Part shown: positions 1,166 through 23,933 of the stretch, piece after piece
Position numbering within the stretch: position 1 is the stretch's first letter
How the letters are laid out: each line of letters starts with the position of its first letter
DNA from: Penicillus capitatus
Taxonomy: Eukaryota > Plantae > Chlorophyta
Direction: 5' to 3'
Assembly: GCA_965649825.1 (NCBI GenBank)
Contig: OZ287701.1
Span: forward strand, 113,101-177,100
DNA length: 64,000 nt
Notes under the pieces: generated by a model
What the model saw: only the letters and a program-made list of their open reading frames with translations
The model's database searches: none
Told to the model about the DNA's origin: nothing
Position numbers and translations under genes: made by a program

Positions 1166-1970
1166 AGCTTACATGCTTGTCGCGAAAGGCTCTAGAAGGC
1201 CATTGTGTACAGAATGGTTTTGAATATGAGAAACCTATGTGACGTCAGACGAGGTAGGTCAGTTCTGAGAGCGTCGTGAACAAACGTTTCTTAACAAACT
1301 ACATTTGTGGTGATCAAACAGATGTGTCAGTCTCCGTGGATGTTGTCCAGTTAAACATTGTCTACCAAGGCGATGATCAGAATCTAGTCGTTGCCCCAGT
1401 CAATTCAGCACTCTTCCCAATTCGTGAACAAATCTTTCTATTCCTCGCTGAAGCAGAGGCGATCTTTGTGATAAAACACTCTCCAAAGAGATCGCGTAAC
1501 AGACTGCGACAATACCTACCAGGCATGATCTGACAACGCTCCGAAGACGAACTGAACGCATAGAGCGAGCGCGAAGTCTGTTGATGCCGTGTTTGATACG
1601 AGAGTTAGAATTTTAGTCCACAACGATGCTGAGCATTACACAGTTCGACAGCATGATTGCAATGGAAATGTTCCAGATTGTTTCATGGCCGAGTGAACAA
1701 GAGAGACGAAATACGGTTCATGGAATCGCCCATATGTTCGTCCCGTGTCCACGCACAAAATGGCGATCATCAAACCTTGCAATGCAGTAGACCATCGTGC
1801 GACTGAACGAGCAAAACCCCTTTGGTTTCAAAAATTCATGACCGAGTGAACAGGCAAACGCAACGATCCAGGAAAACGCCGATGCGTGGCTACCGTGTCC
1901 ACAAACGAAAAAACAACAACCTCCGTGTTTGCAAATTGGTAACCCCCCGAAACAGAATTCAATTTTGAAT

Positions 1971-2618
1971 TCAGGTCGCCCAGAACGCACCCCGAAGTGC
2001 ATTACAGGTGCATTCACCTCCACTGTCATGCGTCAGAGATCTGCTGTTCCAGACTTGAGCATGGGCATAGAGAGGTTTTCCATGAAACGGAGATGGAAGT
2101 TTGAAGTCGACAGGCGCCTTGCCCGCTGGTCTGTACCAAATGGTATCGGTCAAATAGTCGATCTTGATAGCGATAGAATTCTTTGGACTAGAAGGATCAT
2201 CCACCAGCCTGTCGGTATATTTTCTGTTCCAGCCATACTTGTCCTTTATCTCGTCCCTTCCGTAGAATGCAGTCCAAGTATCGCTGTAGAAACCGACGCT
2301 CTTATCGTTAAAGCGGATACCACCGCCGTCAGCGCCACCAACGAAACTTGCGCCGATACCGCAGTGGACACAGTACGATACTTGAAACCATACGTCGTTT
2401 TCCAGCAAGTAACAGCTCTTGACGCTGTTGATATCATTATATCTGCCATCCGCTTTCAACGAGGTGGCAGTGCACGAATCGGCGACTGGGCTACCATAGT
2501 TCGACGTGTAGCTGTCGCAGTTGAAAGGAGTCGGGCAGCACTTCGCCGTCGAACTTGGCACGGTCGCCAACAGCAGAAAAAGTGCAGACAACAACGAGAT
2601 CTTCAAAGTTTTCTTCAT
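1971..2618 (-). CDS. secreted Cys-rich protein with SPRY/B30.2-like (ConA-like beta-sandwich) domain, paralogue A, 215 aa, intronless
   Basis: ATG at 2618. Signal peptide MKKTLKISLLSALFLLLATVPSSTA/KCC. SPRY-like strand motifs WFQV, CGIG, SVGFY, IAIKIDY..TIWYR, LYAHAQVW. TATAAAAG about 97 nt upstream. Frame is conserved in copy B despite about 50% aa divergence in the core. The fold assignment is inferred. Confidence 0.8.
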   Translation of the reverse strand: MKKTLKISLLSALFLLLATVPSSTAKCCPTPFNCDSYTSNYGSPVADSCTATSLKADGRYNDINSVKSCYLLENDVWFQVSYCVHCGIGASFVGGADGGGIRFNDKSVGFYSDTWTAFYGRDEIKDKYGWNRKYTDRLVDDPSSPKNSIAIKIDYLTDTIWYRPAGKAPVDFKLPSPFHGKPLYAHAQVWNSRSLTHDSGGECTCNALRGAFWAT

Positions 2619-2707
2619 TGTAAGCGAGACTCTTTGTCTGATTTGCTCGGCAGCACCAAAGACAAACGACGTAAACGAGGAAAAGCGTTGTGGCTGTAAC
2701 GCACGCG

Positions 2708-2715
2708 CTTTTATA
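2708..2715 (-). promoter_or_regulatory. TATA box of SPRY-like gene A
   Basis: TATAAAAG on the minus strand, 97 nt upstream of the ATG; identical in copy B (23186-23193). Confidence 0.6.
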
Positions 2716-2801
2716 TGCCACAGACAGGCAGCTGATCCGAATGGAACGTACAAACTCACAGCACGCAGCCACATATTTGCGAGGTAAGGGTTACTAAGAG
2801 A

Positions 2802-2921
2802 TGACGTAAACCAACTTTTTGCCAGAGAACGTGAAGCGAACATGAAACGACATACGTGTCCGTCGGCGCAAACAACGTTTTGCCAGAGAACCGGAAACGA
2901 ACAGGAAACAACATACGTGTC
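2802..2921. repeat. 61-bp imperfect tandem repeat (x2) upstream of SPRY-like gene A
   Basis: Two copies of GACACGTATGTYGTTTCMTGTTCGYTTC..GTTCTCTGGCAAAA (minus-strand reading), period 61; same in copy B at 22980-23099. Confidence 0.85.
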
Positions 2922-4874
2922 TGCCATGAAAAGAGGATGTCGTCTAGAGAAAGGAAGGAGGCGCGGCCGATATCCCATTCACGAGTTTGGTCGCGACAGT
3001 CAATTCTAACCATCTGCGAGGTCGAGGGAAGTCGAACTGCCCGATCCGAACCACGACTGCTTTCGAAACGCCCTCCCGTCGCGTCATGGAGAAAGCGATC
3101 TTGTGTCGACCGAGACACAAAACAAGCGTGCACAAGGTGAGCGACAAAGGGAGAACCTCTGTCGTCATCCGGAGTCCAACGTTTGTGTTTTTCTGAGCAA
3201 AGTAGGAGATCATGTCTTCTGACTTTTCTGATAGGGAGGCCGACAAAACTTCTGAGAAGGGCTTTTTTTCGAAGAAGATCTCTTTGTCAGATAGATGTCT
3301 ATCATTTTACGCAGCTTGTCGTGCAAGTTGTGTACGGCGTTAACTAGACGTGTGTACTACTTCTGTAGTCGATACCGAAAACAATGGAACGTACATCCCA
3401 TTACAGGTGTTTCCTGTTCTTTCTTTTTCCGAGCATCGACGACAATAGCATCGCAGCACTGTCAATCTGAACCGGTCGGTATTTCTGCTACTGTAAGGAA
3501 AGCCTCTGGAGCGCACTTTCATTTGATGCCTTGCATTGATTTCAGTCTCTTGCGATTTGACTTCGAACAACACTTCATGTTTACCAAGCTCATCCTGGAT
3601 GTTGTGAGGAGTAGTGGATTGGAGTAAAGGTGAAGGTAAACAAAACAGAAAAAAGATTAGAAGACCTTCAGTCGGTGAGCTAAAGAGCAGTGACCGTAAG
3701 AAACGATAGGTCAACAAGTCTGAAAGCCCTGACAGAGAGACGTGTTTCTTGCAGAGCGCCTTTCGTGTATCCAGCATTGCCGTAGGACTGGATTCCTCTA
3801 AGAATGCCCTCCATCGGAGAACAACGAACTGGCCATTGTCAAGTCATGTAATCGGATGCACTGGAGGAATTGCTCGTGTCTGTGATTTGCAAGAAACTCT
3901 CTATAGCTGTCACATCAAAAGCACTCTCATGTTTTAAGGCACCGGACTCCTGGCGCTAACGACGCCTTCAGATCAGATTTCTCTCCACACGGGCACTTGA
4001 TTCTGCTCCAAGATATCATTCGATAGAGGACATTGCTATCTCGGTCGTTCTTGCACCCCGTTAGACGATGGCATGAAATAGATGACATTAAGATAGCGCC
4101 GATGTCATTTTCTTCATCGCTTGAGCGTCTCTTTATCTTGTCTGCGCTTCGAATTCATTCATAACTTGGACTGTGCGTGCGAGAATCAAAGAGCACGTTC
4201 TGTGGCTATCACATCGCAGGCATTGTATCTGCAATGACGTCTTGTAAACGGCATGCTTGCGTCCTCCCTTTAGAAGTACTGTTACGGGGTTTTTCGATTG
4301 ACGTGACCTTGATTGGGTGACGAACACTACCACTCCACTTCCCTTTCTGTTAGGAATCTTGTAGACAACTTGTTATAAATAGACTCATAGCGTATGCGAA
4401 CGACGACGATAGAACATGCTCGGATGTGAACTTTGAGGACATGAGACATTTATAGTGTAAATGTCGCGTTAAAGTACTCAGGGAGGTTAAAGAATCCTAA
4501 CCATTGCCTCTAACAGTTGGGAATTGCATCGCGAGTTTGCATGCAACCGCTCTATTGTTATTCTGGAGGTTACAAGAAGGGTATCCATCCGTCACTTTCC
4601 GTGGCTCAGAGGCACTTCGGTTGTTATCGCGTGCAAAAGAATCGGGGTGGTTGTCCGCTTACGATTGGTAAAGCAACATCCTCACTTTCTTATCGACGTT
4701 TGCTCTGGAGCGAAAACATATACGGAAGTGCCTGTTTGCGTTTTGCATTTTAGCGCATAAGCACATACGACTCTATTTCAATCGCCTTCTACCTTATCTT
4801 CAAGTTTCGCGCAACTTGTCTGCAACGGCCGCCATTCGTCTTCGCGCACAGCTCGACAGCATCGCTAACGCACA

Positions 4875-7628
4875 ATGGATGGTCGATTCGAATACTCCCA
4901 AATCGTCACGTCCGAGAAAAATAGCGGTTCCGTTGAGGTCAATCGCACCAAACTCAAGAACTTTATGGCTAAATGACGCATCTGACCAGTTTCGGCTGAA
5001 GAATGCTCAGCTATGGAGGCACGAAGATCTCTTCCAGAGCGAAATCTTCGTTATGGGAAGGCTCAAGTGGTAAACCACATCAGGCTTTCTTTCTCTGGAT
5101 GAATGCATGTTCAACAGGAGAGTGGTTTTCTGTCGAACCTTTCCTATGGAAGTCAGCCGCGAGAAATTTCTCGTCCAGCTTCTCTACTGCAATGCGAGTG
5201 TGAACGTCGACCTGTCGGCCGAGTCCGGACCGGATAGCGAGTCGCGCAGGGAACTCGTCAGCAATGTTATTTACATAACTTAGACGATACAGCAGAACAG
5301 TTCTGTTTAAATACCCCGGTCATTGGTCTGTCACGTCGTTACGTAAGCCTCTTCTCAGGCCTCTCGTCATGCGTTCTCCAGTGATATTCTGCTGGCGTGG
5401 CGCCACAAGGACGGTTGGCGCAATAGCAGCGTCCTCTCGCCAGAAGACCCGAGGCAACAGCGGGCACCTTCACATGGGCGCACCCGCATTCCTGCTGACG
5501 CAAACTCCGAGGTACTCTCGCTTCACCGTTCTGCTGCTTCCCCTTGCAGCTCTGACACTGACAGGGTGAGCGGCGGCGGACAGCACAGGAGAAAACGCAG
5601 CGGAAGTCTTTGTCTCTCGCTGTCCCGAAGCACGGTCTTCAGTCTTCACGCACGGTCTTCAGTCTTCACGTCTCCCGAGGCGGTCAGCGAGTCCGACCTG
5701 CCCCCGACGCGGGGCAGCGCTCAGCGCCAGTCCCTCGGTTACGCACCACTCTGGGTCTCCGCTCAGACCCTGCGCTCGAACCCGCTCAAGCGCAGCGGAA
5801 GTCTTGAAATGCGGGCAGCGCGGCAGCGGACCCTTGGTGGACGGCGCAGAGGATGAAAACGAAAACGGCGCAGTGAGTCGGTGAAAGCCGCACTCACGTA
5901 GGCTCGCTCCGAAACCATGTGAACGTCGACCTGTCGGCCGAGTCCGGACCGGATAGCGAGTCGCGCAGGGAACTCGTCAGCAATGTTATTTACATAACTT
6001 AGACGATACAGCAGAACAGTTCTGTTTAAATACCCCGGTCATTGGTCTGTCACGTCGTTACGTAAGCCTCTTCTCAGGCCTCTCGTCATGCGTTCTCCAG
6101 TGATATTCTGCTGGCGTGGCGCCACAAGGACGGTTGGCGCAATAGCAGCGTCCTCTCGCCAGAAGACCCGAGGCAACAGCGGGCACCTTCACAGCGAGGA
6201 CAATCGCCTTCGATCTCTCCATCTCATTCCACAATCAGTTGAGTCCCAACCAAACCTTCGTGCAACAAAGTGCGATTCCTGATGCTGCAGCCGTTTTTTG
6301 ATCTCCGGGGTTCTGCATTTTAGAAAAATTCAGGCAGATCTTTCCTTTCTGCTCTCTATTTTTCAACATTGATGATTACCCAGACTACGACACCATCTTC
6401 AATCCCATAGCAGGCTTCGTAGTCGACAACACCCTTGTCCTGACCATCCTGCTGTCCAACATCAAGAGTGTCGTTGCAAGAGCAAGATCTCCTACCATCG
6501 GGGACGACATGGGGCTCATCTCTGTGGAGATTCTCTCAGAAGACAGCATAAGTGAGAATATGAGAGAGGGATGTCCGTTTGGTATCGCTTCTGTCAAGAG
6601 AAGGCGACATCATATTGCCAAACGCAAATCGGTTATCAGTACCCTCAAGGTGCTGTCAAATCTATCAGACCTCAAATCACTCTCTGTTCTTGGTGTCTCC
6701 AGATGCCAAACAGCCGTCTGTGGCTCTGTGAACGTACGGCACGAGGTGCTATCCCGCTGCAGACCTTGAACAAGATGCCAGTAAATACAAGATTTGGTGA
6801 CCTTCGGACAGACATGTTCAGAGAGCAACCGTGGCTGACCTTGTTTCGAGAACGTTGGCCTCCCGACGAATACTTTCCCTGCATTTCAGACAACGATGTC
6901 ACTGTTTTCTGCAAGCTTTATGATCCGGAAGCGAACGTGTTGACGTATGAGGGATCTCTGCAGATTTCCAGATCAGAGAGATGTCTGGGTTTCATCAACA
7001 GACTCGCAAATCTGGCAGAGGTCCCCGTCGGCATTGGATTCGATGTCTACATCGAAGAAGGCGATCTCAGTGTGAGACATATCTCGAATCTCTACGTTTC
7101 GATCCTCTTTGTGAGCAATGCACACGGGACATCTCACCCATCTCGCTGCTCACTGTCTGCAGACGGGTGTTGTTTCTGGATCGGTGGTTGTCGTGCGTCC
7201 GAGGCTTGACGGACAGGAAGTCTCTGAAGATACTGTCCGAGCTGAACTGATGGCCAAATACGCAGAAGGACTCGAGGTCTCTGAAGAAGAGGAGGAACAG
7301 GAAATGGCGAGAGATCCACGGACTCGAGAATCGCAGGTAAAGATCATTGACCCGCGACGGCTTCAATCACCTCTGTCTTCTGCACGGCAAGGTTGTAGAG
7401 GATGACATGTGTGTTCTGTGCATGGACGCCCCACGGACTTCTGGCTTTCTGCACGGCACAACGTACCATCCCGCCTTTTGCATGTTATCTCCCCGTGCTA
7501 CTGTTCTTGTGTTCAGTTCCCATCGTTGCGTCTGTGAACCCTGTGCTCTGAAGATCTCACAGCAGGCGCAGCCACGATGTCCCATCTGTCGTGCCGCCAT
7601 TCAGCACACCATCTTCAAGATGTTCTAA
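4875..7628 (+). CDS. MATH/TRAF + USP7-like UBL + C-terminal MDM2-type (C2H2C4) RING protein, copy 1; exon 3 interrupted by a TRIM
   Basis: 8-exon model MDGRFEYSQIV...FRLKN..EIFVMGRLKW (MATH), FCKLYDPEANVLTYEG (USP7/UBP12 UBL-type), CVLCMDAPRTSGFLHGTTSHRCVCEPC..CPICR..FKMF. Intron positions are shared with 61895-63647. No lesion other than the insertion. Confidence 0.8.
5199..5474. repeat. LTR of TRIM (left)
   Basis: No difference from the right LTR found by eye; TG...CA ends. Confidence 0.95.
5906..5917 (-). other. primer binding site (tRNA-iMet-like) of TRIM
   Basis: TGGTTTCGGAGC directly abuts the LTR and differs at two positions from the plant/algal iMet PBS TGGTATCAGAGC (one would be a G:U pair). 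Confidence 0.6.
5918..6193. repeat. LTR of TRIM (right)
   Basis: No difference from the left LTR found by eye; TG...CA ends. Confidence 0.95.
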
Positions 7629-8038
7629 AAACTCTGATTTGAATGCATTATTTACTCTTACGAACGACGATCGCAATGTGTGTTTTGTGTGTGTCTTCAC
7701 ACAGACAAACCTCTTATTTGCCTTTCCACGAATCGTATCCAAACATCTGCCGAGACGGCTGCAAGAATTTCATGACCGACATTCATACACGAGCAGCCTG
7801 TCACTGCATTTCTTTCGTCTTCCATTTCGCTGTCCTTAGACGTACATCTGTTTTCATCGAGGCGAGGGATTATCGCATGGGTGATTGGTTAGAGGGACGT
7901 CATTTAATCACTTTCCGATAAGTGGCGCGATCGGTTATCGCGACATTAACGCATTGCGCTGTTTCAACATCAAACGCCGAGCAGGATTGCCTTTCCATTG
8001 CTTCACATACGAATGATCTTCGTCGACAGTTTCACAGA

Positions 8039-9778
8039 ATGAGTAGCAGCAAACTGGAATACTCTGAAAGAGTGCTGTCGACTCCAGCCGGAGGGTCCAT
8101 TCAGGTATGTTAGGCGCGAGCATCTTCAGTGAGTCTGCTCTTCTCTGTACAGTTGCGTATCAGAGATTTCGGCAACCTGCGACATGGAGACATGTTCATG
8201 ACGGAGCCGTTCGAACTGGATGGCATCCAATGGTGACTTTTGTGTCCTTCTCTTCTCTGCCACCGTGGACATGTGTCTACAGGAAACTCATTCTGTTTCG
8301 TTTGTCAGAGCTGTCAACGGAATCGGACGCAGCGATCGAGCATCTCATGGCGCATGTGGTTCTGTGCAGCGATGTTTCTCTTCACTACAAGTACTGGATT
8401 TCGTTCCAGAATCACCTCGATCCATCCAGAAGTCACGTGGAAGCAGGTTCGATTGCGCCATTTGTCCAGAAACGAATTTCGCGTTCTCCTTCAGCCGAGT
8501 GGGACAGTCAATGTGTCCATGCCATGCAGTTGACGGCCGCGCATCGTGTCCAGTGTCGCATGCCATACGAAACGATTGTACATCCAGGATCCGGATTTCT
8601 CTCGGATGGAACACTGAAGGTTTCTGCAGAGATTAAACACATGGACAAGTTTATGCATCTACTGCAACCTACCAGAGATCCAGCATTCTGCAGCATTGAG
8701 TTTATCACGTCGACAACAATCCGTGACGGAATGAATGACCACATACATTTTGGAGTAGCTTCGAGTAAAAGACGAAGAAGAATGTTTATCACACATTCCG
8801 ACGCCACGATACAGTCTCTTCTGGATGTCTGTCCATCTCAAATGTCATGATGTGACGTCTGTGCCATTTTCAGGTGGCTGAATACCGTGCCTGGCTCTGT
8901 GATTGGTCTCCAAATGGCACGGTCTCCATTCGATCGTGCCTCAATCAGCTGTCAGAGACCATCACTTTTCGGGAGATTGCCAAAAATCATGATGCAGAGC
9001 ATCAATGGCTGCTGATCTTTATGGAATGTGACCTCAATGAAGCACGTCCGCTGACGAACGACCCGCCCTCTGTCATTTTCTGCAAGCTGTACGACCCAGA
9101 AGCGGCAACTTTGACGTACATCGGGCATATCTTGGTGCATCGAGGCCGTTGGTGTTTTGACCTTTTCTCTGACATCGCCGATCTCGCCGCCCTTCCTCCT
9201 GGACGGAAATTCAATCTCTACCTCGAGGTCCACGAACAGAACCGGAACGTCAAAGAGATCACAAATCTCTTCGAGTCTATCGGCAGCGTAGGTGATCCGT
9301 CTGCCAACGCACCGCAGCTAAGATCTCTGTAGAATGGTCTGGTCTCCGGTTCGGTCATCGTAATCCGACCCAGAAAGATCGAAGAGGAAGACGTATCCGA
9401 AGAAACGGTACAGAACGAGCTCTGCTTGATCTATGCAGACGAACTGGGTCTCGCCAGTGATGAAGAGGACAGAGATGACGTCGGGGAATCGCCAGCCGAG
9501 GTCTGCTCAATCCTGTCAGCTGTGATCTCGTGTTACAGTGTCGTGTCGAGGATGAGAGCATGTGTGTTGTCTGTTCGAGTCGTCCCAGGACAGCTGGCTT
9601 CGTTCACGGAACATCGTAGGCTCCGTCAAGCTCTCTGCAATAGATTTTCGGTCTGTTTTCTTTCAGGCTGCATCGTTGTGTGTGCGAGGACTGTGCAAAG
9701 GAGATCGAGCAGATGCCGGAGCCCAAATGCCCCGTCTGCGATGCAGCAATTGACCACATTATATTCAAGACGTATTGA
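8039..9778 (+). CDS. MATH/TRAF + USP7-like UBL + MDM2-type RING protein, copy 2 (divergent tandem paralogue)
   Basis: 7-exon model MSSSKLEYSERVL...EPFELDGIQW|KLILF, GFLSDGTLKVSAEI (MATH end), IFCKLYDPEAATLTYIGHI, CVVCSSRPRTAGFVHGTSLHRCVCEDC..CPVC..IFKTY*. Confidence 0.85.
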
Positions 9779-10191
9779 ACAGAGAATGAATGCCTTGTAC
9801 TCAGATATGGATACCTGATCCGATACAAATTGCACGGCGATGCGTCCACAGCTTCCAACCTATCTCTCGGACAGGTGTCCCTCCCTGGCCAGACAAAACA
9901 CATCCGACGATGCGACACGCTGCCGTTACCAGTAAACACATGCAGGAGAGGTGGGATTCTTCTTCTTGGACGCCTACCCTCGAATCTCTATGCAGAAAGG
10001 GCAACAGTAAACCAGCCTCCCACAGCGGTCTGCCAGATGCCGAGCGTTGCCTGCTTGTGACTTGGATGAAGGACTTCCTTGAGTCTTGTCTTATTTCTTC
10101 ACATGCTAAAAGCGTGTCTCTGTTTCCTGTTTTTTTGTAGGACTCGTCCATGGCGCGTTATGTTTGAGATCCTCCTCGATTCTCATAAAAA

Positions 10192-11748
10192 CTAAATGTG
10201 CATCATTCCCATTCGAAACAGTGCTTTTGTCCCAACGGTGTACATCGTCCAAGTGCAGCACGTCCACCAACAGAGGAATCCGCTAATGTCATACAGATAT
10301 CTTTCCTTTTCGGCATATGCCAAGAGGAGCAAGATGCCAAAGGCCAGAGAGCACGCAGACAACAACAGAGCTTGGATAGCCACTTTACACAAAAGGAACC
10401 AACACTTGGAGACGTGATGTGCCGTAATCGTCATCGCCGCATCGGAGTTCTGATCTCCTTGATGCAGCTGGACGGTATCATACCAAGCAAGCAGCCCCGT
10501 ATTGAGGTATCCTTGCATCAAGGGACGAAACAGAACGATCTGGGACATCCCTAGCATAAGCGCACACCATATCTGGCTGCTATTCAATCTCTCGTCGGCG
10601 ATGAAATTGAGAGGGGCGATCCACAGAATGCAATTGCACAGCAGCAAGATGTCTTGAGCATTGTGCACGGTACCAAACCACACAGGACATCTGAGCGAGA
10701 TCGATAGCCCTAGGGTGGATGACAGCATTAACTGAGATGACCTAAACGCCCAACCAACATCTCAGAACGCAGAATCCTCTCTGCGAACCGACCTGGTGCA
10801 GCGGATGGCTGGATTCAGAACGGCACAGCTAATGATACCAGCTATGATGGAGAGAACGATCTTGAGGTGTTGTCCTTCCAATCGAACACTATTCAGCATA
10901 TCTAACATACGACATCGTCAATCCATCATACAGACTGTGTGCTTTACTTGTGTAAGATGTGGCTTTGGTGCCTGACGGCGCTTGGGTGTGGATGTCGTGG
11001 ACGATCTTGTCGAGTTTCTGATTGAGATCGGCCGTCGCCTGTTCCAAATCGAAACAGAACCAGGTTGGCTCTGCGACACTGAGCAGGGCGAAGCTGACAA
11101 GGGCTCCCATCATGAACACCAGTGCCAGAAACCATCTCTCCCACTTGAGCGTGTGGATCGACATGAACTCTATCTGCACACTCCCCTGCTCCAGAATAGA
11201 TCAAAGCCCAGTCGACAGACCTTCAAAAGTGTGAAAAGAGTGACCACTATGGCCAGCACAGCGAACGGCTTCGTCATGAGATTGCTGTTCGTGAACAGCG
11301 TCGGCAGAAAGAGAGAAATGCATCCATGCATCATCATCAAGGCCAACATCGCCACCTAGTTCATTAGCTTCTTTACAGCTTCCGTCTCGCATCCAATTCA
11401 GAAATGCACCACAGAATCGTACTCTCGAAAGAACGTCCATTGCTTCACTGTGAATGGCGACAGTTCAATCTGCAAGATCTGCTGATCAGGCGAGTCGATA
11501 TTCAAGGCCCTGCGTTTCGCCCGGTGTCCTCTGCGACGTTCCTCGCCGCGCTGAAGCACTCGACTCCTCAGTGCCTCCTCCTCAACGTCGTAGTAAACGA
11601 GTCCCGTGAGTGATGACTGCGAGAGGGACCATCTAGCATCGCACACGCTCTTGCTCTATCGACCTGTTCCCGTAGCTCACCGTTTTCCAGAGATGAGTCG
11701 CAGGAGAGCAAACGAGAGGGCAAAGTACACGAGTTGACCCACAAACAT
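10192..11748 (-). CDS. TMEM161: TMEM161-family multi-pass membrane protein
   Basis: Exons give GLVYYDVEEEAL..., FFREYDSVV, LSIIAGIISCAVLNPAIRCTR, LWIAPL, FRPLMQGYLN, matching remembered TMEM161 motifs; ~50-nt GT-AG introns. Confidence 0.7.
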
Positions 11749-11802
11749 TGATAGGCGAAATGGGAATGACGCCCAGGGGAGATTGCATTTTCCAGGCATC
11801 CG

Positions 11803-12345
11803 ATGATGGAAGCTGTCGACAACGCCGCTTTCGACGTCCAGCAGATCCAGACGTTTCTCATTGGACTGGGCGGCGGCGGAGCGCTGGGCGTCATCACGGG
11901 CGCCGCGCTCAAAGTGAGATCCCTCGCCTCCTCACACACGCACTCATATCTGCAACATAGCACACAGCCAAACGTGTTGCCATTGCCTTGGGCACCGTCT
12001 TCATCTTCCTCCAAGTCGCATCTCCGATACGCAAAGACGTCACGGAACGTGGGCGGGTGGGTGACACCCGTTGCAGGTGACGCAGTTTTTTGGGTTTGTG
12101 GATGTGCGTTGGGATAAAGTGACGGAGAGCGCTTTGCCGATCTTCGATGCCAACGATGACGGGTTGAGTGCCCACCGAGGCGATACCGATTTCATTCAAT
12201 GTGTGATGGCAGGAAGTTGACGGAGGACGACGTACGTCACATCATTCAGCAAGGGATGATACTGGCACCCGACGTTCTCGTGCGTGGACTGCCAAACGTG
12301 GCCGGATTCACGACAGGAATGCTAGTGGCTTTTTGGTTTCTCTAA
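11803..12345 (+). CDS. FUNDC1: FUN14-domain mitochondrial outer-membrane protein
   Basis: GLGGGGALGVITGAALK|HTAKRVAIALGTVFIFLQ|VTQFFGFVDVRWDKV..DANDDGKL..GFTTGM; three short introns. Confidence 0.75.
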
Positions 12346-12490
12346 CCGTATCGGATGGACATGATCGCACAGGCCAGTCATTTTCTTCATATATGCTCAG
12401 ACAGTAACCGTCGCAACGTTTGCAACCTTACTCTTAGACATTCATACGGTATCGCTCGAGTCTTGTCCTCTCGCCAAAGGCATCGTCCAT

Positions 12491-13654: not shown

Positions 13655-13689
13655 CGTTCGTTTTCTGGTCTTAATCAGTCGGTAATGAG

Positions 13690-14187
13690 ATGGGTGGTCG
13701 ATTCTCTCGCGTCGCTGCTTCGGCTCCCCGTGTGAAGCCTCCTTCCACTCCGGCCAAGACAACCCCTCCGCCTGCGGAGCCTCTCGCTGCTGAGCGCAGC
13801 AATGTCGAATTCGTTCCTCCACGAGAGCCACTTGAAGAAAGGGACCTGGAATTTGAGAAACAGCTCTACGCGATGACCGATCGCATCGAAAGCGTCAACG
13901 TCGTGTTCGTTCCAGGCAGCGATCCAGTCTCGGCAGAAGCTAAACGCAAGAAGAGACGGGAGATGCGACAGAGGATGTTGCGCGGACGCCTGACGGTGGC
14001 GCATTTCAAAGAAATTCTCATTCAGCAGGACACTGTTCAAGACGCCCAGCGTGAAGCTTGGCTCGAACGCATGGCCCAGAGATACGAAGTCGATCGCGAT
14101 CTCTTGGCCCAGGTGCTGCGTTTCTATCGATTTCCGAAGATGACCAAGCGCTATGATGGATACCTCGTTGCCGATCCGTGGCTGTGA
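13690..14187 (+). CDS. NDUFAF4-like (UPF0240) complex I assembly factor, single exon
   Basis: 165-aa ORF with MG start (myristoylation-like) and GRLTVAHFKEIL..MAQRYEVD..LLAQVLRFYRFP, resembling the NDUFAF4 C-terminus. Confidence 0.6.
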   Translation: MGGRFSRVAASAPRVKPPSTPAKTTPPPAEPLAAERSNVEFVPPREPLEERDLEFEKQLYAMTDRIESVNVVFVPGSDPVSAEAKRKKRREMRQRMLRGRLTVAHFKEILIQQDTVQDAQREAWLERMAQRYEVDRDLLAQVLRFYRFPKMTKRYDGYLVADPWL

Positions 14188-14291
14188 CCATCTTCGCAAC
14201 GGTCACACATCTTCTTTGTGACGTCACATCAAACTGTACGGCACTTTTGTGAGATCTTGGAGTCTTAATTGTACGACACTTTGAGCCACGC

Positions 14292-15228
14292 ATGATCGCA
14301 TTAGCTGGGAGAGGAGCGAAGATCGCGCGGCCGAGATGCGGAGAAGGACGGCGACGAAGTCCCAGTCGAACGTCGGTGTCGAAGCGACGTGCCTTCGGCG
14401 TCGACGTGTCGCAGTTTGAGGGTATGATGGATGCAGAGACGAGCTACGCAGGTGTGACCGCTGTTAAACTTACCGCTTTCAAAAGAGTGATGTCTGGAGT
14501 GGTGTACGGTGGATTGGGTCTGCTCGCCACGAGCTTTGCCGCGACGTTTTTCGTGGCGCCCGCCTTTCATACGTCACTGAAGGAACCGGAGGAGTGGAAG
14601 GACATTTACCCACAGCTCGTTCAAAAATCCACGCCATCGATCACACCCCTCCAAGCGGCGGCTAAGCTCTCGAATCCTCAGTCACATCACCATGAGTGAG
14701 ATGACGTCTAAGGCGTCGTGACTGTAGGTGTGTCCTGTTGGACGTGAGTCTCGCCAGTCGTTATGAAAAGAATGCCGCGAAAGGTTCCATCAACATTCCA
14801 CTCTATCAACCCATTGAAGGCAGAGAAGGACTATGATATGATGTGACGTTACGAGATGTGTGAGCAGGATGGGATGTCGCATCCGTTGCCAGGAGAGCAG
14901 CTTTTACCTTCTTTGGCATTCCGGGAACGGAGCGCAATCCATCTTGGCTGTCCTCCATCGAGTCCACCATTCCCAAGACCCATGAGGTCATCGTGATGTG
15001 CGAACTGGGAGGAACGCTCGAGACGAAGGTCGGTATGGATACCGGATTTCAGTCAAGGTCCGTCTTAACAGATCAATTGATGCGGCCAATGCAACATCTA
15101 GCAATTCTAGATCACTTAAGGCCATCCATTTCATGCAGGAGGCTGGATATGATAATGTCGTCCATCTGAAGGGTGGCATTGGTGAATGGATACGAGAGGG
15201 ATTGCCAATGACCAAACCCATTCAGTAA
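14292..15228 (+). CDS. rhodanese-like domain protein, plastid-type (STR14-like)
   Basis: VLLDV..SINIPLYQPIEGWDVASVARRAAFTFFGIPGTERNP..VIVMCELGG..SRSLKAIHFMQEAGYDNVVHLKGGIGEW; three introns, one GC-AG. Confidence 0.85.
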
Positions 15229-15267
15229 TATCTGAATCTCATGCGTTCTGAAAAAACTCCCTCATAC

Positions 15268-16388
15268 TCAACGTGACGTTTGAAAGTGTTGTGTGTCTTG
15301 AAATCTAAGCAGAAGCGTTTCCACTTCGACCTCTTTTGTTAGAGGAATGATCCAATCTCGGTACAACGTTGCTGCGACATCGCCATAACCTGTATACCCA
15401 TTTGACACGCCTCGCCCCAAAAGAGTGAGAAGAGTGATGCCTGAATGTTTATCGTAGTGTTGGGCCTTAGATCGTACGCGTTGGATGATACGCTCTTCGA
15501 CATCTTCATGTGTCAGCTCCCTCATGATGCCCTCTCTATCAGCCGCCTTGACAAGCATCGTATAGCGTTCAGGATCGCTCCTAATTTGAGTGAGAAAAGT
15601 GTGATCGTGCGCGAAGTGGAGGACCTGAATTTTGCCTCGGCCACGTATTTTCCTAGATGAATGCGACGGGAGAGAGATTTTAGACATTGGACGTCGGCAA
15701 ACACCGTTGCCGCATAGTTTCCATCATCCCCTTGAGAGACACACCCTGCACCCACCATCCATTATCCGCCTGTCTAGATGCGGCACATATGTCTTGCTTG
15801 GTAGGATGAGGTGACGATAATCCTCGTAGATTTTCGGATTCACATTCACAAACCGCGATGATGCAGGAAGCTCCGAAGAAACGGTATCGTCTTCAGAAAG
15901 GCTCCTGAAGAATGGATGGTAGGCAATGCTGCGACAGAATGAAAGCTTCTCCTCGAGCTTCTCCTCTTCAGACAACACATACTCCAATAGACTCATGTCC
16001 TTTCCCCCTGGAAACCTCCACTATGAGGTAGGTCCAAGAGTGAGAGGGTGCCTGGATGTGTGAGAGTATCTGTTGTGTATGCGGCTGCGTTGATAGGATA
16101 GTGTGATCGCGCATAGAGGTGGAAGATAATGGTGTCCTCTTCCTTGACCAGTTCATTCCGAACGGCATCCAGCGACAGCATGGAGCCCTTTTTCATAACT
16201 GCCGATTTGCTACGGGAGCGGTCGTCGCTGACTGACACAACGCTGCGGCCTTTTGGCAGGACTCGAATTGGCGCTGTCGATTTCGAAGAGGCGTGGCGTC
16301 GTGACCGTTGTCGCGAAAAGAGACAAGTGGTTTGCGAACAACGCCACCTCACTCGGCACATTGACACATTGACGAGCTGCATCGTCAT
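15268..16388 (-). CDS. CM1: chorismate mutase (eukaryotic AroQ type), plastid-targeted
   Basis: [66 protein letters not shown]; Ser/Arg-rich transit peptide. Confidence 0.92.
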
Positions 16389-19300
16389 GCGCCGATGGTT
16401 TCCTCTCATCCGCAGGGCAGTCGATTCGACACGTCTCCTGTCTCCTTTGCTGCCGCATCTCGCACGCGGTCTACACGATGAGAGCGAAGTGGTGGGTGGA
16501 CTTAGGGATCTGTCACCATAACGAGGGGTCTGTTCTTTGTGAAGGTTTGGGCCAAGGAAGAGACACAGGAGCAGTGGAGAAATATTCTGGACGTTCCGAT
16601 GCCGTCTCTGGACGAAGATCCATTCCATCTGCTTCAACCGACACCGCCACGACGGTAGCTTCCCTACAGCTTCGCGACCAAAGGACCGTGATGGAACGTC
16701 TTGTGGTTCAGGAGCACGAAATGGGGCTATGCCGAGACAGAGCAGGTGGAGTTTGTCGACTTCCGTTTCTTAAGCTCGTGGGAAGAGGTCCGAAACGTCG
16801 TCGAGTCCATCGGCACGGCGTTTTCAGCCTATCATGCATCGGCCGCCTTTGCTCGGCTGCGATATCTGCCCCGTCCCGTCGACAGCGAACTGCTCCATGG
16901 CCTCGTCGAGAAGACAGAGCCTCTCATCCCTTCGATGACGCCACATCAACTGATGACCATTCTCTTCTCCGTTCTGCGTCTGGAGATGATCGAGGGTCGC
17001 GGATTTCTGGAGAAGCTGGCAGAGCAGCTGATGCAGATGGATGTGACACCTCGTGCGACGGGCGATGTGACGAAGCTCATGTTTGGTATCGGTCTGGGCA
17101 AACGTCACATCAGCTGGAGTCTCGATCCCATAAAGCACCAGCACTATTGGGTCTTCCCTTCCGAAACGAAGCTCATGATCTACTTGAGAGATATCCTGAA
17201 GAACAATGAGGAGCGACTGAGCCAGCTGACGGAAGTGGAATGCGCACAAGTTCTCTTTGCCCTTTCGCAATATCGCAGAGCATCCGATGGCGAAGGGCAC
17301 CTGCTGCATCGCATTTGCGACCTCTTGGCTGATCACCGCGCCATCAAGGAGCTCAACGAGACATACCACGTCCTGGTCATCACCAGTCTCGCGGCATTGG
17401 ATCTGCGACATCAGCTGCTGATCGATCGCGTGCTCTACCAGAATATCCGAAGCGGTGCCGTCAAGACATACATGGCTCAGGAGATCGTTACCATTCTTTA
17501 CTGTCTGGGCAGTCTACGGCACTGGAACCGGGACATCACCGAGTCTCTTCTGACAGAGCTCCTCAAACCGCATCATCTGAGTTCTCTCACAGAGCAGGGA
17601 GTGGCCAATGCGATCTATGGCGTTGCGCGAATGGGCGAGTTGAAGGGACTGGATAAGGAACCTTATATTCTGCCGCTGTTTACCGAAGCGGCCCGTCCGG
17701 AACGCATAAAACGTTACATCAGTATAGGCCTGACAGGGATTCTCTATGCAGCGGGATTAATGGGGTTCCCCTCCGGACAGTATCGACACCGACTCGTTCC
17801 TTTCCTCGAAGAGCTTACGGTTCCGACGCGAATGGTGGCGGTCTCGACTCATGGATTGGCAACGGCTTTGTGGGGAATGGGGAAAGTGGGATTAAAAGAC
17901 ATCCGCTTCATCGATCCCTTGCTCCAAGAGAGTCTGAAGCCAGGGAGATTGCAAGGCATGGAGAATCAAGGTCTCGGTCTGCTGGCTTACTGTTGTGGCC
18001 TCTTGAGGCATCGCAACCAACGTCTGATGGAAAAACTCGTGACAGAGGCCAACCGACCCGCACGGATGCAGAGCCTAACGTAAGATGTGCTCGCTCTGGC
18101 TGCCATCGTCTCTGCAAGAGTGGTCGGTGGTTTAGGGATCGGGATATCTCGCATTTGGCATATGGGATTGGTCGGACGAACTGTGTTCCACTCGCCGCCG
18201 TCATTCCTCTTATCCAGGTGAAAACGGCGATGATATGAAGAGTGTGCGGTATTGGTGCTCTGTTTCTTTGTTTCTGTGCAGGAGACGCTGAAACCTGAGA
18301 GGCTGGCGTCCTTGGAGGCGAAGCATATCTGTCAGGTTCTGCAGGCGGCGACGATGCTGGATTACAGACACTTGGGTAATCTACGCTTCCTGCTCAGAGC
18401 GGTGTACAAGAAACACAGAGAAAACAGAGTGGATCCTATCGAACTGCAAGAACTCCTTATCAGCTGCAGTCGCAAGCCGGCGCTCATTCAGTACACTGAA
18501 CTTTGACGGCGGTACCGCATCGATGTGCTCTGTGTCTTTGCAGATCTAGAGAAGCTCGGACTTTTGTGTACACGGCATTGAACGAAGAGATTCTGCAGCA
18601 AACCAGAGCACCGCAGCTGAGTTCATTGGGGACGATTATGTCGATGCACCTGCCCTTGCTCAAAATCAAACCTGAGCATTGCAAGAGATATGCGGATGAA
18701 GTGACCAAGGCAGAAAGACTGACAGAGTTCAATCCAGTAGATCTGACAGGCATCTACGGCACGTTGATCCGACTGGATGTCTGGTAGTGCTAATACCTAG
18801 GCAGATCTGCCTCCAGCGTTTTCTTTTTAGGGAGGAGACTAAGTTGATATCGATCTTGGAGGCGATCGAGAAGAAACCGCTGTCGCCTATTCGAAAGCCT
18901 ATCCAATTTGTCAATGCCACGGTCGCGACGAACCGCGTCCAAGAAACGCCGTTGCACGGGCAGCTACTGGAGCGACTGCTGTCACACATTCTCCGGACGC
19001 CCAATTTCTCCCTCTTCGAATCGACAGATTCCTTCGCCATGCTTATGGCTTTACTCGAATCCCGTCCCTTGCCTGAGTTTCGCCCAACGTGGGAAGAAGC
19101 GATGTGCCGTTTCGCAGGGATTGCCCAGAAGGGTCCTCTGTTTAACATGTCCATGATGCATCTGATGCGTTGCCTGCGGCACTATGTGAGAAGACAGGAG
19201 GAATTGTCTCCCCAGACAGATGTCGTCTCTTGGCTGCTGCCAGAGATCTTTGAAGAGAGAAGGATCCGTTCGGCATCGGATGACATGCTGGTCGATTTGG

Positions 19301-19566
19301 CCGAAGATGTTTCCCAATCGACACGTACGTCTCCCGTGCAGCAATCCGAGGCATTGGCCTCTTTGCATATGGTCATGGAACAGACGCAACGATTTAAGAA
19401 CCTCTCCGAGACGCATGCCGAGAAACTGGAGTTTCTCTTTCAGCAGTTTGCTCCACAGCTCACTATTGCCGGTCGACAGATGCCGCGCTCATCGGCTTCC
19501 TATTCCTACGAGAGTCACTTCATCGCCCGAGACCTGGAACGTCAGATTGGCCTCGCAGATGAGTGA
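16387..19566 (+). CDS. organelle-targeted OPR/FAST-like helical-repeat protein 1 (39-aa repeats), multi-exon
   Basis: Spliced model [18 protein letters not shown]...; repeats such as LTEQGVANAIYGVARMG..EAARPERI; ORFs 16701..18083, 18252..18506, 18503..18787 and 18787..19566 join through GT-AG introns. Confidence 0.75.
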
Positions 19567-19608
19567 GATGGCGGCGCCGAACAGCAGAACGCACTCTATT
19601 ACTCAAAT

Positions 19609-21783
19609 CTACATGAGATCTTTCAGAAAGTCTGCCGTTTCTTCCAGTTCTTTCCACGTGGATTGATTATCCGTAAAGGGAGGAGGAATGCAATGTACAA
19701 ACTCTTGAAATACGGAAAGGAGTTCGAGATGATCATTTCGATCTATGTGTGACATTTTTGAGTGATCCACACTTTGGCATGCCTCGCATCCGATGTGTAT
19801 AAGAGAGGAAAGCAGGGGCATGACACAAGGATAGGCATTCTGCAGCTTCTCCACAGCTTCCGGAATCTGATCCTTCTCCGTAGGAATGAAATCCAAATCA
19901 CAAATGCGTTGCAGAATGTGATCTTCACGCATTGTCTGAGCATGGAACACATCTGCGACGCTTGCCAATATCCTTGTCTCCCCATTGGGACAACCGAGTG
20001 TCTCCTGGACATACTCGATCGTCCGCCGGACATCTCTGAGAAACGTCACACGCTGTTCTCTCTGTGCTGTACCGGAGAGATGAGCGCACTGAAGCAAGAG
20101 ATGCACCACCTGTCACATCACAGTCATCAGCATCCACACACATCTCTGGCGAGATGCATCTACCAGTTGATGACAGGTTTCAGCGGCGGCGGCCACGTGA
20201 TTGATCATCTTGTAGAGGATGACTGCCAGTTCAAACGCCTTTCGATCGGCGCATTGACTGGCTGCTTGTTCAAAGATGTCCTTTTTATCATCGGCATTTT
20301 GGATGGAATGCTCCAAGACGTTGCCCGTTTGGAGCACGGACACATCGCAAGATCGTATGAGAAGATCTACCAACACGCGCGCCTTGTCTTCGTTCGAAAT
20401 CCGCTCTCCTCTGTGCCAGATCTTCTGTGTCAGGATATAGTAATGCCATGCCGTTTGGCTCTTGGAGGCGGCGAGACTGTGGCCGTAGTGCATGACGAGA
20501 TCGGCCACGTCTTCTGGCTTCAGCTGCTTGAGATCGGCCGCTTCTGGCAGCTCTAACAGTCCATGATGGTGCAAAGCAATCGCCATATGCACCACGTGCA
20601 CCACATAGGAGTGCGCCTCGACGTTTTGCGTCATCAAATAATACAAGGCACTTCCGAATTGCAGCCCGGAGAACAGCACCAGGGCATAGCGCATCGGATG
20701 GCGGCCGTTCTCCGTGTAGTACATCTCCTGGTAGGAAGAGAGCCTCGAACGCAGGCGTTTATAATCGAATGGCACCGAAGGGCCGCTGCCCGATCGAACG
20801 CAGCCCAGAGAAAACCAGAGAAACTCGTCCAGCGAATCCCAGCTCTGTGCCGATTCCGAGATCAGCGTATCGGCGACGTGGATCTGTCCGCAGAGAAAGG
20901 CAACCGACATCAGCATGTAACGGTACGCCGAACTGAGCTTCTTTCTGGCACCGTGGCGCATGAATTGGAGACAGGCCTGTTCGAGCTCCGAGAATCGACA
21001 GCAGGCAACGTAGGAAGGTCGTTGCATGAGTGTCCTCAGATAGTACTCTGGCGTTTCGCATCGACATCCTCCCGGGAAGACAGCCTTCGATGCAAACTCC
21101 GTTGCCGCTGCGTAGTCTCCACAACGAATCGAGATATAAACCAGGGCCCATGCTGGATAGGCTGTATCGTGAGGAACCAGTTTCTTGTGGACGTACATTC
21201 GAATGGCATCCTGTGTTCGGCCAGTGGGCATCCCGCAGTCGCGGGCCACTTTGTGGACATGGCTCAGGAATTTCTCCTCGAAGAAACGCTTGGCACCTTG
21301 GATAGGGTCCATGACGGGACGTGTGCGTTCGTTGCCTGGCACCACAGCGGCCAGGAGCTTCCAGAGAGATGCCATCTCGCATTCGGGATCGACGGCATCG
21401 ATGGCATTGCGAAGATCGGTGAGAAAATCGTCGTGATTGCGGTTCAGCTTCGCGACCGCTTCCGCAAAGAGCTGTGTGAGACGGCGCTCGGTGTCCGTCG
21501 TTGTCGAGAAGAGGTGTCCCTCGGCGATCCGTACGTGGACGCGTGTCCATATATTGGTTCGCACCTTCCCCTCAGCTTCAACGTCGCGTCGCGGAAGAGC
21601 GAGCGACTCGTGCGGATCGAACAGGAGTGTTCTCTTCTCGCCCGTCGTGACTCGACTGAGCTCGTTAGAGAGCGTATCGACATTCGTCGCACCATCGAGT
21701 GACGCCAGAATCGTCTGGCCTAACTCGAGCAGCTGCGAAGGCGTCCTTCCAATAACGCCAACTTGTCGTCCTTCGAACGCCAT
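19609..21783 (-). CDS. NUP93: nucleoporin Nup93/Nic96
   Basis: GAKRFFEEKF, WALVYISIRCG, EFLWFSL, LQFGSALYYL, HMAIALHHHGLL match the Nic96 family; ORFs 20113..21804 and 19609..20109 are joined by an intron. Confidence 0.85.
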
Positions 21784-22979
21784 GGCACAGAAATGACGGA
21801 ACAAATGCCGCTGCTATCTTAATGTCATCCATCATTCCATTCGTTTGACGGTGTGCAAGGACATCTAGACAGCAAATGACTCTATCGAGTGATGTCCTGA
21901 AGCAGAATCAAGGGCCATGTGGAGAGAAATCTGATCGGAAGGCGTCATTAGCGCCAGGAGTTCCGTGCCTTAAAACATGAGAGTGCTTTTGATGTGACAG
22001 CTGTAGAGAGTTTCTTGCAAATCACAGACACGAGCCATTCCTCCAGTGCATCCGAGTACATGACCTGACAATGGCCAGTTCGTTGTTCTCTGATGGAGGG
22101 CATTCTTAGAGGAATCCAGTCCACCAGGCAATGCTGGATACACGAAAGGCGCTTTGCAAGAAACACGTCTCTCTGTCAGGGCTTTCAGACTTGCTGACCT
22201 ATCGTTTCTTAAGGTCACTACTCTTTAGCTCACCGACTGAAGGTCTTGTAATCTTTTTTCTGGTTTGTTTACCTTCACCTTTACTCCAATCCACTGCTCC
22301 TTACAACATTAAGGATGAGCTTGGTAAACATGAAGTGTTGTTCGAAGTCAAATCGCAAGAGACTGAATTCAATGCAAGGCATCAAACACAACTAAGCCCT
22401 TGGAGGCTTTCCTTACAGTAGCAGAAACACCGACCGGTTCAGATTAACAGTGGTCGTGATGATGTTCTGGTTGAAGCTCGGAAAAAGAAAGAACAGGAAA
22501 CACCTGTAATGGGATGTACGTTTCATTGTTTTCAGTATTGATTACAGAAGTAGTACACACGTCTAGTTAACGCCCTACACAACTTGCACGACAAATTGCA
22601 TGAAATGATAGAGATCTATCTGACAAAGAGATCTTCATTGAAGGAAACCCCTTCTCAGAAGATTTCTCAGCCTTCCGGTCAGAAAGCATGATCTCCTGTT
22701 TTGCTCAGAGAAACACAAACGTTGGACTCCGGATGACGACAGAGGTTCTCCCTTTGTCGCTCACCTTGTGCACGCTTGTTTTGTGTCTCGGTCGACACAA
22801 GATCGCTTTCTCCATGACGCGACGGGAGGGCGTTTCGAACGCAGTCGTGGTTCGGATCGGGCAGTTCGACTTCCCTCGACCTCGCAGATGGTTAGAATTG
22901 ACTGTCGCGACCAAACTCGTGAATGGGATATCGGCCGCGCCTCCTTCCTTTCTCTAGACGACATCCTCTTTTCATGGCA

Positions 22980-23099
22980 GACACGTATGTTGTTTCCTGT
23001 TCGTTTCCGGTTCTCTGGCAAAACGTTGTTTGCGCCGACGGACACGTATGTCGTTTCATGTTCGCTTCACGTTCTCTGGCAAAAAGTTGGTTTACGTCA
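22980..23099. repeat. 61-bp imperfect tandem repeat (x2) upstream of SPRY-like gene B
   Basis: Units start at 22980 and 23041 (GACACGTATG...). Confidence 0.85.
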
Positions 23100-23282
23100 T
23101 CTCTTAGTAACCCTTACCTCGCAAATATGTGGCTGCGTGCTGTGAGTTTGTACGTTCCATTCGGATCAGCTGCCTGTCTGTGGCATATAAAAGCGCGTGC
23201 GTTACAGCCACAACGCTTTTCCTCGTTTACGTCGTTTGTCTTTGGTGCTGCCGAGCAAATCAGACAAAGAGTCTCGCTTACA

Positions 23283-23933
23283 ATGACGAAAACTTTGAAG
23301 ATCTCGTTGTTGTCTGCACTTTTTCTGCTGTTGGCGACCGTGCCAAGTTCGACGGCGAAGTGCTGCCCGACTCCTTTCAACTGCGACAGCTACACGTCGA
23401 ACTATGGTAGCCCAGTCGCCGATTCGTGCACTGCCACCTCGTTGAAAGCGGACGGATCGTGGAACCAGGTCAACACTGTCAAGTGTTGCTACGTGTTGGA
23501 CGAAGACACATGGTTTCAAGTAACGTGCGATAAAAACAAACAATGCGGTATCGGCGCAAGTATCACTGGCGACGCCAACGGTGGAATCCGGTTTAACGAA
23601 GAAAGCGTCGGCTTCTACTGGGGTGCGGAGACGAGTCATTACGGAAAGGATGAGATACCAGACGAGGATGGTTGGAACAAAAGCTTCGCCGACAGGCTGA
23701 AGGATGATACTTCCACTCCGCCGAATACTCTGGCTGTCAAGATTAACTATGTGAATAGTACCATTTGGTACAGGCAATCGGGCAAGGCGCCTATCGACTT
23801 CAAACTTCCATCTCCGTTTCATGGAAGACCTCTTTACGCCCATGCTCAAGTCTGGAACAGCAATTCTCTGACGCATAACAGTGGAGGTGATTGTACCTGT
23901 AATGCACTTCGGGGTGCGTTCTGGGCGACCTGA
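23283..23933 (+). CDS. secreted Cys-rich SPRY-like protein, paralogue B, 216 aa, intronless
   Basis: MTKTLKISLLSALFLLLATVPSSTAKCC...WFQV..CGIG..SVGFY..LAVKINY..TIWYR..LYAHAQVW; TATAAAAG at 23186-23193. Confidence 0.8.
   Translation: MTKTLKISLLSALFLLLATVPSSTAKCCPTPFNCDSYTSNYGSPVADSCTATSLKADGSWNQVNTVKCCYVLDEDTWFQVTCDKNKQCGIGASITGDANGGIRFNEESVGFYWGAETSHYGKDEIPDEDGWNKSFADRLKDDTSTPPNTLAVKINYVNSTIWYRQSGKAPIDFKLPSPFHGRPLYAHAQVWNSNSLTHNSGGDCTCNALRGAFWAT

Follow-up and report, generated by a model that had tools for sequence, protein, structure and literature searches.

Evidence for recurrent gene conversion around a deeply diverged core in paired genes for predicted secreted SPRY-fold proteins

How can two copies of a small gene be almost identical over their promoter, leader and first codons, and be strongly diverged immediately afterwards? 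The question is raised by a stretch of 64 kb from Penicillus capitatus (contig OZ287701.1, positions 113,101 to 177,100 of the forward strand; this whole stretch is called “the window” below), where two genes, which we refer to as gene A and gene B, are located in the two arms of an inverted repeat. The answer that we prefer, at a probability of roughly 0.45 and thus somewhat short of even odds, is that the genes encode a secreted binding protein of the SPRY fold, for the body of which several specificity lineages are maintained; that the regulatory, leader and 3' parts are made alike and shuffled by non-allelic gene conversion; and that the divergence that has accumulated reinforces the boundaries of the conversion tracts. 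The genes form a lineage-specific two-locus family, i.e. two inverted arms on each of two haplotypes, so that four copies in total (A, B, C and D) have been compared.

The repeat search has revealed a single large inverted repeat of 2.9 kb in the window; its arms (1163-4097 and 21813-24744) align over 2932 bp at 90.9% overall identity and lie 17.7 kb apart. The features that are needed in order to follow the comparison are given here by their positions in the window:

1163..4097, minus strand: arm A; in gene orientation, the intergenic copy from the Nic96 side, the promoter and 5' region, the predicted SPRY-fold gene A and the 3' flank.
1971..2618, minus strand: gene A, a single-exon coding sequence of 215 amino acids plus stop, with the putative signal peptide at codons 1-25 (2544-2618).
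2124..2448, minus strand: divergent core of gene A, which covers codons ~59-168 and corresponds to the predicted SPRY-fold body; the outlier lineage among the four copies.
2449..3188, minus strand: A-side copy of the newest putative conversion tract, which runs from the upstream region through the 5' leader and the signal peptide to codon 58.
4098..21812, no strand: spacer between the arms, 17.7 kb, unique, syntenic in a related genome.
20116-21783, minus strand: Nic96, located in the spacer and abutting arm B.
21813..24744, plus strand: arm B; the inner part, 21813-22907, is probably ancestral intergenic DNA next to Nic96, and the remainder bears gene B.
22713..23452, plus strand: newest putative conversion tract, B side; allele C is 10% away from both A and B here.
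22980..23092, plus strand: two 52-nt direct repeats with a period of 61, in the 5' region of gene B; the A-side counterpart is at 2809-2921.
23283..23933, plus strand: gene B, a single-exon coding sequence of 216 amino acids plus stop, with the putative signal peptide at 23283-23357 and the same architecture as gene A.
23453..23780, plus strand: divergent core of gene B, with a nucleotide divergence of 29% from A and of 19% from allele C.
23781..24100, plus strand: second putative conversion block, i.e. the 3' end of the coding sequence and the proximal 3' flank, where most site patterns are once more of the A=B kind; the A-side counterpart is at ~1801-2123.

The mosaic of A/B identity that a first-pass annotation of this DNA had claimed is borne out by alignment along both arms. 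In their inner parts, the arms are identical at ~90% of the DNA positions; over the promoter, the leader and codons 1-58 (B 22713-23452 against A 2449-3188, with coordinates inside this tract being converted as A = 25901 - B), the “about two” differences that had been counted by eye over ~740 bp are exactly 2 in 740 sites, located at B 22840 and at B 23287, the latter in codon 2 (K/T). The core follows, with three in-frame indels between B 23453-23780 and A 2124-2448, and the high identity that had been reported for the last codons and the 3' flank is indeed regained after it: over the last ~47 codons the two proteins agree at 89% of positions, and the DNA of the 3' end and outer arm is ~94% identical. 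Expressed as protein identity, A and B agree at 98% of residues 1-58, at 54.5% of the core and at 89% of the tail, in accordance with the earlier description of a half-identical core with small in-frame indels and rewired cysteines (KSCY..YCVHC vs KCCY..TCDKNKQC).

The history of this mosaic can be read with the help of the copies from the other haplotype of each locus. Copy C is located on a 15x haplotig, adjoining Nic96 at the same place as B, and in its unique flanks it agrees with the window at 98.3-98.7% of positions; by this position and these near-identical flanks, C is an allele of B. The second copy was found by walking along the contig:

L005 9070-9707, minus strand: copy D, the putative allele at the A locus, on the 723-kb main contig.

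Copy D has lost 1 bp, reaches a TGA nine codons too soon, has cysteine in place of a family-invariant tryptophan (W190C) and possesses a degraded 5' region that is only 27-70% identical to those of the other copies; it is probably a pseudogene allele, decaying and segregating opposite an intact allele, and for the comparison it was split into two in-frame pieces. The indels that distinguish A, B and C all have lengths divisible by 3, and 9 of the 12 invariant or near-invariant positions of the protein family are retained by all three of these copies, so A, B and C seem to be constrained to stay folded proteins.

Three- and four-way site patterns show that the nearest relative of a copy switches in blocks along the arms. 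At 22387-22710, A agrees with C (41 of 43 informative sites); at 22713-23452, it agrees with B (73 of 75); in the core, all copies differ from each other and the site patterns are mixed; at 23782-24100, A equals B again for most sites; at 24446-24650, A equals C again; and blocks of B=D and C=D occur in other parts. Copy C is located at the B locus, yet is A-like in two blocks, and the longest A=B runs have not been reached in any of 5000 permutations of the variable sites. Since the nearest relative switches in blocks, and beyond all permutations, recurrent non-allelic gene conversion between the arms, in tracts of ~50-750 bp, is well supported as the cause of these patterns; the homogenisation of the flanks by gene conversion, which had been proposed from A and B, holds with the extra copies C and D and with the permutations. 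The newest tract, of 740 bp, ends sharply at the core.

The core itself stands apart from its surroundings in age. Its synonymous divergence (dS) is 0.26-0.59 for all six pairs of copies, and outside the core the A-B value is 0.05-0.10; between alleles, the nucleotide divergence of the core is 19% for B-C and ~33% for A-D, and that of the flanks 1.3-1.7% for B-C and ~4-12% for A-D, so that alleles of the same locus are ~10-fold more divergent in the core than in their unique flanks, and in the core they differ no less than paralogues do. Because dS itself is high, the core appears to be an island of old divergence and not merely a site of fast amino-acid change, with the SPRY body present as four deeply diverged lineages. 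The core tree, (A,(B,D),C), does not group the copies by locus, and the lineage of a core is thus uncoupled from the locus that carries it.

The ratio of non-synonymous to synonymous divergence (dN/dS, ω) in the core is 0.45-0.99 for single pairs. By maximum likelihood (GY94), it is 0.79 for the four copies, where twice the log-likelihood difference (2ΔlnL) from ω=1 is 1.3, and 0.88 for the three intact copies, where it is 0.3. Sites that are conserved in 14 distant relatives give an ω of 0.64 and sites that are variable in them an ω of 1.15, neither of which is significant; pairwise values are 0.37-0.60 in predicted strands and 0.44-1.33 in predicted loops, the highest being that of the A-C loops, and the mature protein outside the core has an ω of about 0.7. 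The first-pass annotation had described the core as “kept or driven apart”: that it is kept apart agrees with its dS and with the ~10-fold allelic excess, and that it is driven apart by selection finds no backing in an ω that does not differ from 1. The annotation had also called this part the “ligand-binding region”, where the variable part is most of the predicted SPRY-fold body, strands included, rather than loops alone. A core dN/dS well below 1 without excess polymorphism, which had been named beforehand as telling against the proposal, has not been seen in either respect.

What kind of protein is encoded can be stated in part from the reading frame itself. In both genes, the order is signal peptide, cysteine-rich N-terminal segment, predicted SPRY-fold body and short disordered tail; the signal peptide, MKKTLKISLLSALFLLLATVPSSTA followed by K, has classic n, h and c regions that can be read straight from the sequence, and the products are thus predicted to be secreted. 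The mature protein contains 9 cysteines in A and 10 in B. Pfam recognised neither A nor B nor any of the 17 members of the family, and with the E limit relaxed to 10 the SPRY model (PF00622) still matched none of them; phmmer found nothing in the Protein Data Bank (PDB), and a profile search against the PDB only weak ones, e.g. to the PRY-SPRY domain of TRIM15 (E 0.34), aligned at the C-terminal motif. AlphaFold2 with the family alignment has returned an all-beta model with a predicted local distance difference test score (pLDDT) of 85.5 and a predicted template modelling score (pTM) of 0.79. When this model was compared with the PDB by Foldseek, SPRY/B30.2 structures made up almost all of the top 50 matches listed, among them SPSB2, GUSTAVUS, RanBPM, DDX1, TRIM65, TRIM21 and BTN3; the best E among the matches listed is 5e-6, with a probability of 1.00 and template modelling (TM) scores of 0.40-0.61. 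The confident all-beta model, taken together with a match list that is dominated by SPRY structures, indicates that the body of the gene A and gene B products is a divergent SPRY/B30.2-type beta-sandwich in a secreted protein, one that passes the fold test and fails the curated-profile test. The SPRY/B30.2 fold is a protein-binding platform throughout eukaryotes, and a role in binding or recognition would be reasonable for a protein with this predicted fold.

The family to which the proteins belong is new and sparsely distributed. An exhaustive HMMER search of 1.84 billion representatives has found 11 relatives, which share a module of ~165 amino acids with invariant or near-invariant elements such as G-I-G, the arginine of an IRFN motif, Y.D, LP and Q.WN. 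The module occurs in four contexts: in tandem arrays; with a signal peptide before it and a transmembrane anchor after it; fused to a U-box; and within a protein of 5676 amino acids. Two relatives (P0007 and P0011) combine a signal peptide, tandem domains and a transmembrane anchor; a further one of 513 amino acids (P0008; JGI/Logan/MetaClust) has a U-box (Pfam E 5e-12) fused to the SPRY-like module, a layout of E3 ligase plus SPRY that parallels the RING/SOCS-SPRY proteins. Family members with a named source come from Caulerpa lentillifera, Paulinella micropora and an MMETSP transcriptome, and the closest named match is Caulerpa lentillifera, at 36% identity for Nic96 and 41% for the SPRY-like protein. 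Among 5.8 billion proteins, the close relatives are only A, B and a third at 63% identity, i.e. C, all in one ENA assembly, and no relatives of the gene were found in JGI metagenomes; as the window contains no third paralogue either, a third paralogue as the donor of the cores has been rejected. In our search of the literature, secreted SPRY proteins of algae were not encountered.

A second ENA assembly, from a related genome, allows the arms to be placed in order of origin. It contains a syntenic segment of ~82-86% DNA identity, with a Nic96 that is 91% identical as protein; the alignment covers the window from 4103 to 22907 and ends there at both sides. In the related genome, arm A is absent, an unrelated gene is located at the place of gene B, and the SPRY-like domain was not found when the family profile was run against six-frame open reading frames (ORFs). 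As only 4103-22907 can be aligned, the inner part of arm B (21813-22907) is probably ancestral, and the SPRY gene, like all of arm A, appears to be specific to the genome studied here. The possibility that the arms are the terminal repeats of a mobile element has been ruled out, because the spacer between them is syntenic in the related genome.

How these observations might belong together can be put as follows. The body would set the binding specificity of the protein, and differing specificities would be retained by diversity-favouring or balancing selection; with distinct specificities retained in the body, conversions that overwrite it would be removed, and conversions of the regulatory and leader parts would be tolerated or even favoured, keeping expression and export alike in all copies. 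The ~20-30% divergence that has accumulated would by now also act as a mismatch barrier, halting conversion tracts at the edges of the core. Diversifying or balancing selection on the core is, in our judgement, plausible but unproven; a role as an effector, in immunity or in mating would be drawn by analogy and is speculation.

Several points weigh against this proposal. No test gives an ω that is significantly above 1, the likelihood estimates for the core being indistinguishable from 1; these tests rest on three intact sequences, and recombination biases such tests. The allelic comparisons cover two haplotypes per locus only, and the core varies in strands as well as in loops. Since D is a probable pseudogene and the related genome is without the gene, the SPRY-fold gene is dispensable in some backgrounds. 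Finally, the window is identical to one ENA haplotig up to 11928, carries the variants of that haplotype up to 15251, and is identical to the ENA 723-kb main contig from 15252 to 33933, with the switch of haplotype lying between 15251 and 16370, across a stretch where the haplotypes are identical; because of this switch, the window sequence may be a phase-switched pseudo-haplotype and the pairing of A and B in cis a phase switch, with A and B on different homologues. The true phases may be A+B and D+C, or D+B and A+C.

Much of this can also be accommodated without any selection for diversity, in an account that we find somewhat unlikely and that comes closest to the preferred one. The copies would be old, weakly constrained duplicates, in which conversion evens out the parts that have stayed similar enough, and the bodies of which, once past ~15-20% divergence, became shielded from conversion by the mismatch-repair barrier, in a family that is drifting to loss; differences between paralogues that have been moved between the loci would then appear as extreme “allelic” divergence. 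An ω of 0.8-0.9, statistically indistinguishable from 1, fits this account, and so do the similar ω of the remaining mature protein, the decay of D (frameshift, early stop, W190C and degraded promoter) and the lack of the gene in the related genome. The core of D groups with B and not with its allele A, which means that a whole-core transfer between the loci has occurred, as the account would have it. What it does not explain is the number of lineages: at least four core lineages, each at a dS of at least 0.26 from the others, occur in only four copies, with unique flanks that differ by 1-4%, and two ancestral paralogue types cannot account for the mutual distances of B, C and D. It also counts against this account that A, B and C keep their frame, in-frame indels and scaffold residues despite a divergence of ~30%.

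The preferred reading, retention of body lineages amid conversion, could be carried further, to an extracellular self/non-self or pathogen-recognition locus of the alga that is built on a secreted SPRY fold, where specificity alleles would be balanced and long-lived, and where non-allelic conversion would shuffle specificity cassettes from one of the two loci to the other and at the same time keep regulation and export the same in all copies; we regard this fuller version as unlikely.

Less probable still is that the core is a mutational hot spot, e.g. through error-prone repair tied to breaks or conversion, and is neither of great age nor under selection. In such a case dS and dN would rise together with an ω near 1, as they do here, and the ratio of transitions to transversions is ~1:1 in the core as compared to 2-3:1 in the flanks; a low ratio is, however, also predicted by saturation and by amino-acid-changing substitutions. 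The substitution spectrum contains all six classes with no bias, i.e. no strand- or base-specific bias of the kind left by repeat-induced point mutation (RIP; C-to-T) or by a diversity-generating retroelement (DGR; A-specific), and both kinds of hypermutation have been rejected, the template repeat also not being found in the window. The sole nearby reverse transcriptase belongs to a long terminal repeat (LTR) retrotransposon on another haplotype, and the boundaries of the core match the ends of conversion tracts and no sequence feature.

That the identical tract or the haplotype copies are an assembly artefact (through repeats that were collapsed, reads that mapped to several places during polishing, or contigs that are chimeric) is very improbable: compared with the ENA assembly, the window is a mosaic of haplotypes, and both assemblies may share reads, but separate ENA contigs, with the labels 28x and 39x, reproduce both arms base for base, the shared-ancestry blocks vary from pair to pair with C and D included, adjacent segments at 4-10% divergence have been resolved without trouble, and long reads far exceed 740 bp.

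Some additional elements are located in or next to the arms. The pair of 52-nt direct repeats upstream of the predicted SPRY-fold genes is the best-conserved non-coding stretch among A, B and C, is degraded in D and contains an ACGT core in each unit; it is a candidate regulatory element. An in-frame extension of 120 codons 5' of the signal-peptide methionine has been rejected as coding, since most of the few B-C differences in it alter the amino acid, with seven replacements over about 103 codons, and we read it as leader or promoter DNA. A non-coding RNA in the identical tract has also been considered; no Rfam or tRNA match was obtained across the whole window. An ORF of 145 amino acids in the inner arm has been rejected as a second gene, being poorly conserved, with unstable ends and a further ~70% copy elsewhere. 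This copy, of the ~560-bp piece around the ORF (window 22098-22636 and 3270-3809), is located at L001 9958-10515 on the alternative haplotig, to the right of the B/C locus, where the alignment between haplotig and window ends; the piece is more likely a dispersed repeat, and the location of the extra copy suggests a structural difference between the haplotypes.

The spacer and the surroundings of the arms have also been inspected. At 5194-6198, the window contains an element of 995 bp (5199-6193) with two terminal direct repeats of 276 nt that are 100% identical, each of them starting with TGTGAA and ending with TTCACA, and with a flanking 5-bp target-site duplication, GCGAG; because neither the other haplotype nor the related genome contains this element, it appears to be a recent, heterozygous insertion, of a miniature LTR-type element similar to terminal-repeat retrotransposons in miniature (TRIM-like). 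Outside the arms, the window encodes a leucine-rich-repeat protein and two proteins with von Willebrand factor A plus C-type-lectin domains (31693-33204, minus strand; 52821-54596, minus strand; 57637-59541, plus strand), and in the related genome NACHT NTPase genes are located at both ends of the syntenic segment, just past the positions of the arms (L008 17186-20257 and L007 19127-21664); as a recognition-gene neighbourhood, these surroundings are suggestive, no more. The Nic96 segment occurs at least twice on a 599-kb contig of the related genome (ctg303700, ERZ26696514; L007 and L008), where the copies face opposite ways at a distance of ~40 kb, and once more on a contig of 659 kb, which reflects either a large inverted segmental duplication or haplotypes that were joined by the assembler.

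What is new in this locus is a Pfam-invisible family of secreted SPRY-fold proteins, as predicted, together with interlocus conversion around an island that is hyper-divergent also between alleles. It adds to the SPRY fold an uncharacterised branch that would be used outside the cell and whose members are scattered over distant algae and protists, and it offers a compact natural example, with two loci and four sequenced copies, of conversion meeting deep divergence at a sharp boundary within a small gene. If the diversity is selected, an alga would here provide a candidate recognition system, which is rare, and one that is tractable, the gene being a single 650-bp exon with LRR, lectin and, in a relative, NACHT genes in its surroundings; if it is not, the locus would be well suited to measuring to what extent conversion tracts are restricted by divergence in sequence.

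Compared with the SPRY/B30.2 superfamily as a whole, the likeness lies in the matches of the predicted fold (SPSB2, GUSTAVUS, RanBPM, DDX1, the PRY-SPRY domains of TRIM proteins and the B30.2 domain of butyrophilin) and in the U-box-fused relative, which echoes the E3-ligase-plus-SPRY architecture; most characterised SPRY domains are, however, cytosolic, whereas the product of gene A or B is a predicted secreted, cysteine-rich protein, from a family that is tiny, patchy and without a match to Pfam SPRY. Hypervariable SPRY surfaces are known from the secreted SPRYSEC proteins of nematodes and from TRIM5alpha (PMC5071358). The SPRYSECs of cyst nematodes resemble the proteins described here in their signal peptide and single SPRY-fold domain (the fold being predicted in our case), and in a strong variability on a stable scaffold in which duplication and recombination are involved (PMC5071358). 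They differ in that they match standard SPRY models, number tens to hundreds of genes and contain sites with demonstrated positive selection, whereas here there are two loci only, no significant ω > 1 and an organism that is free-living by all signs; with no Pfam SPRY signal, a close kinship of genes A and B with SPRYSEC is unlikely. The B30.2 domains of TRIM5alpha and the finTRIMs likewise present a variable recognition surface on the same fold, with loops that vary more than strands, but they belong to intracellular proteins with RING, B-box and coiled-coil, and show ω > 1 in defined variable loops, in contrast to the predicted secreted, single-domain product of gene A or B, with a core ω not distinguishable from 1.

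With respect to conversion, the nearest parallel is that of the GOT1 paralogues of Tigriopus and the theory of Fawcett and Innan, where homogenised tracts surround a divergent island and conversion creates alleles of novel combination, and where divergence islands that persist amid conversion are pointers to selection, not proof of it (PMC3728101, PMC3924837); unlike in GOT1, the arms are here inverted and 17.7 kb apart, the island is hyper-divergent also between alleles of the same locus, and its lineage is uncoupled from the locus. This allelic divergence of the core, far above that of the linked flanks in two haplotypes per locus, is the feature that the two loci share with recognition loci of the type of the major histocompatibility complex (MHC), the S-locus and the R genes.

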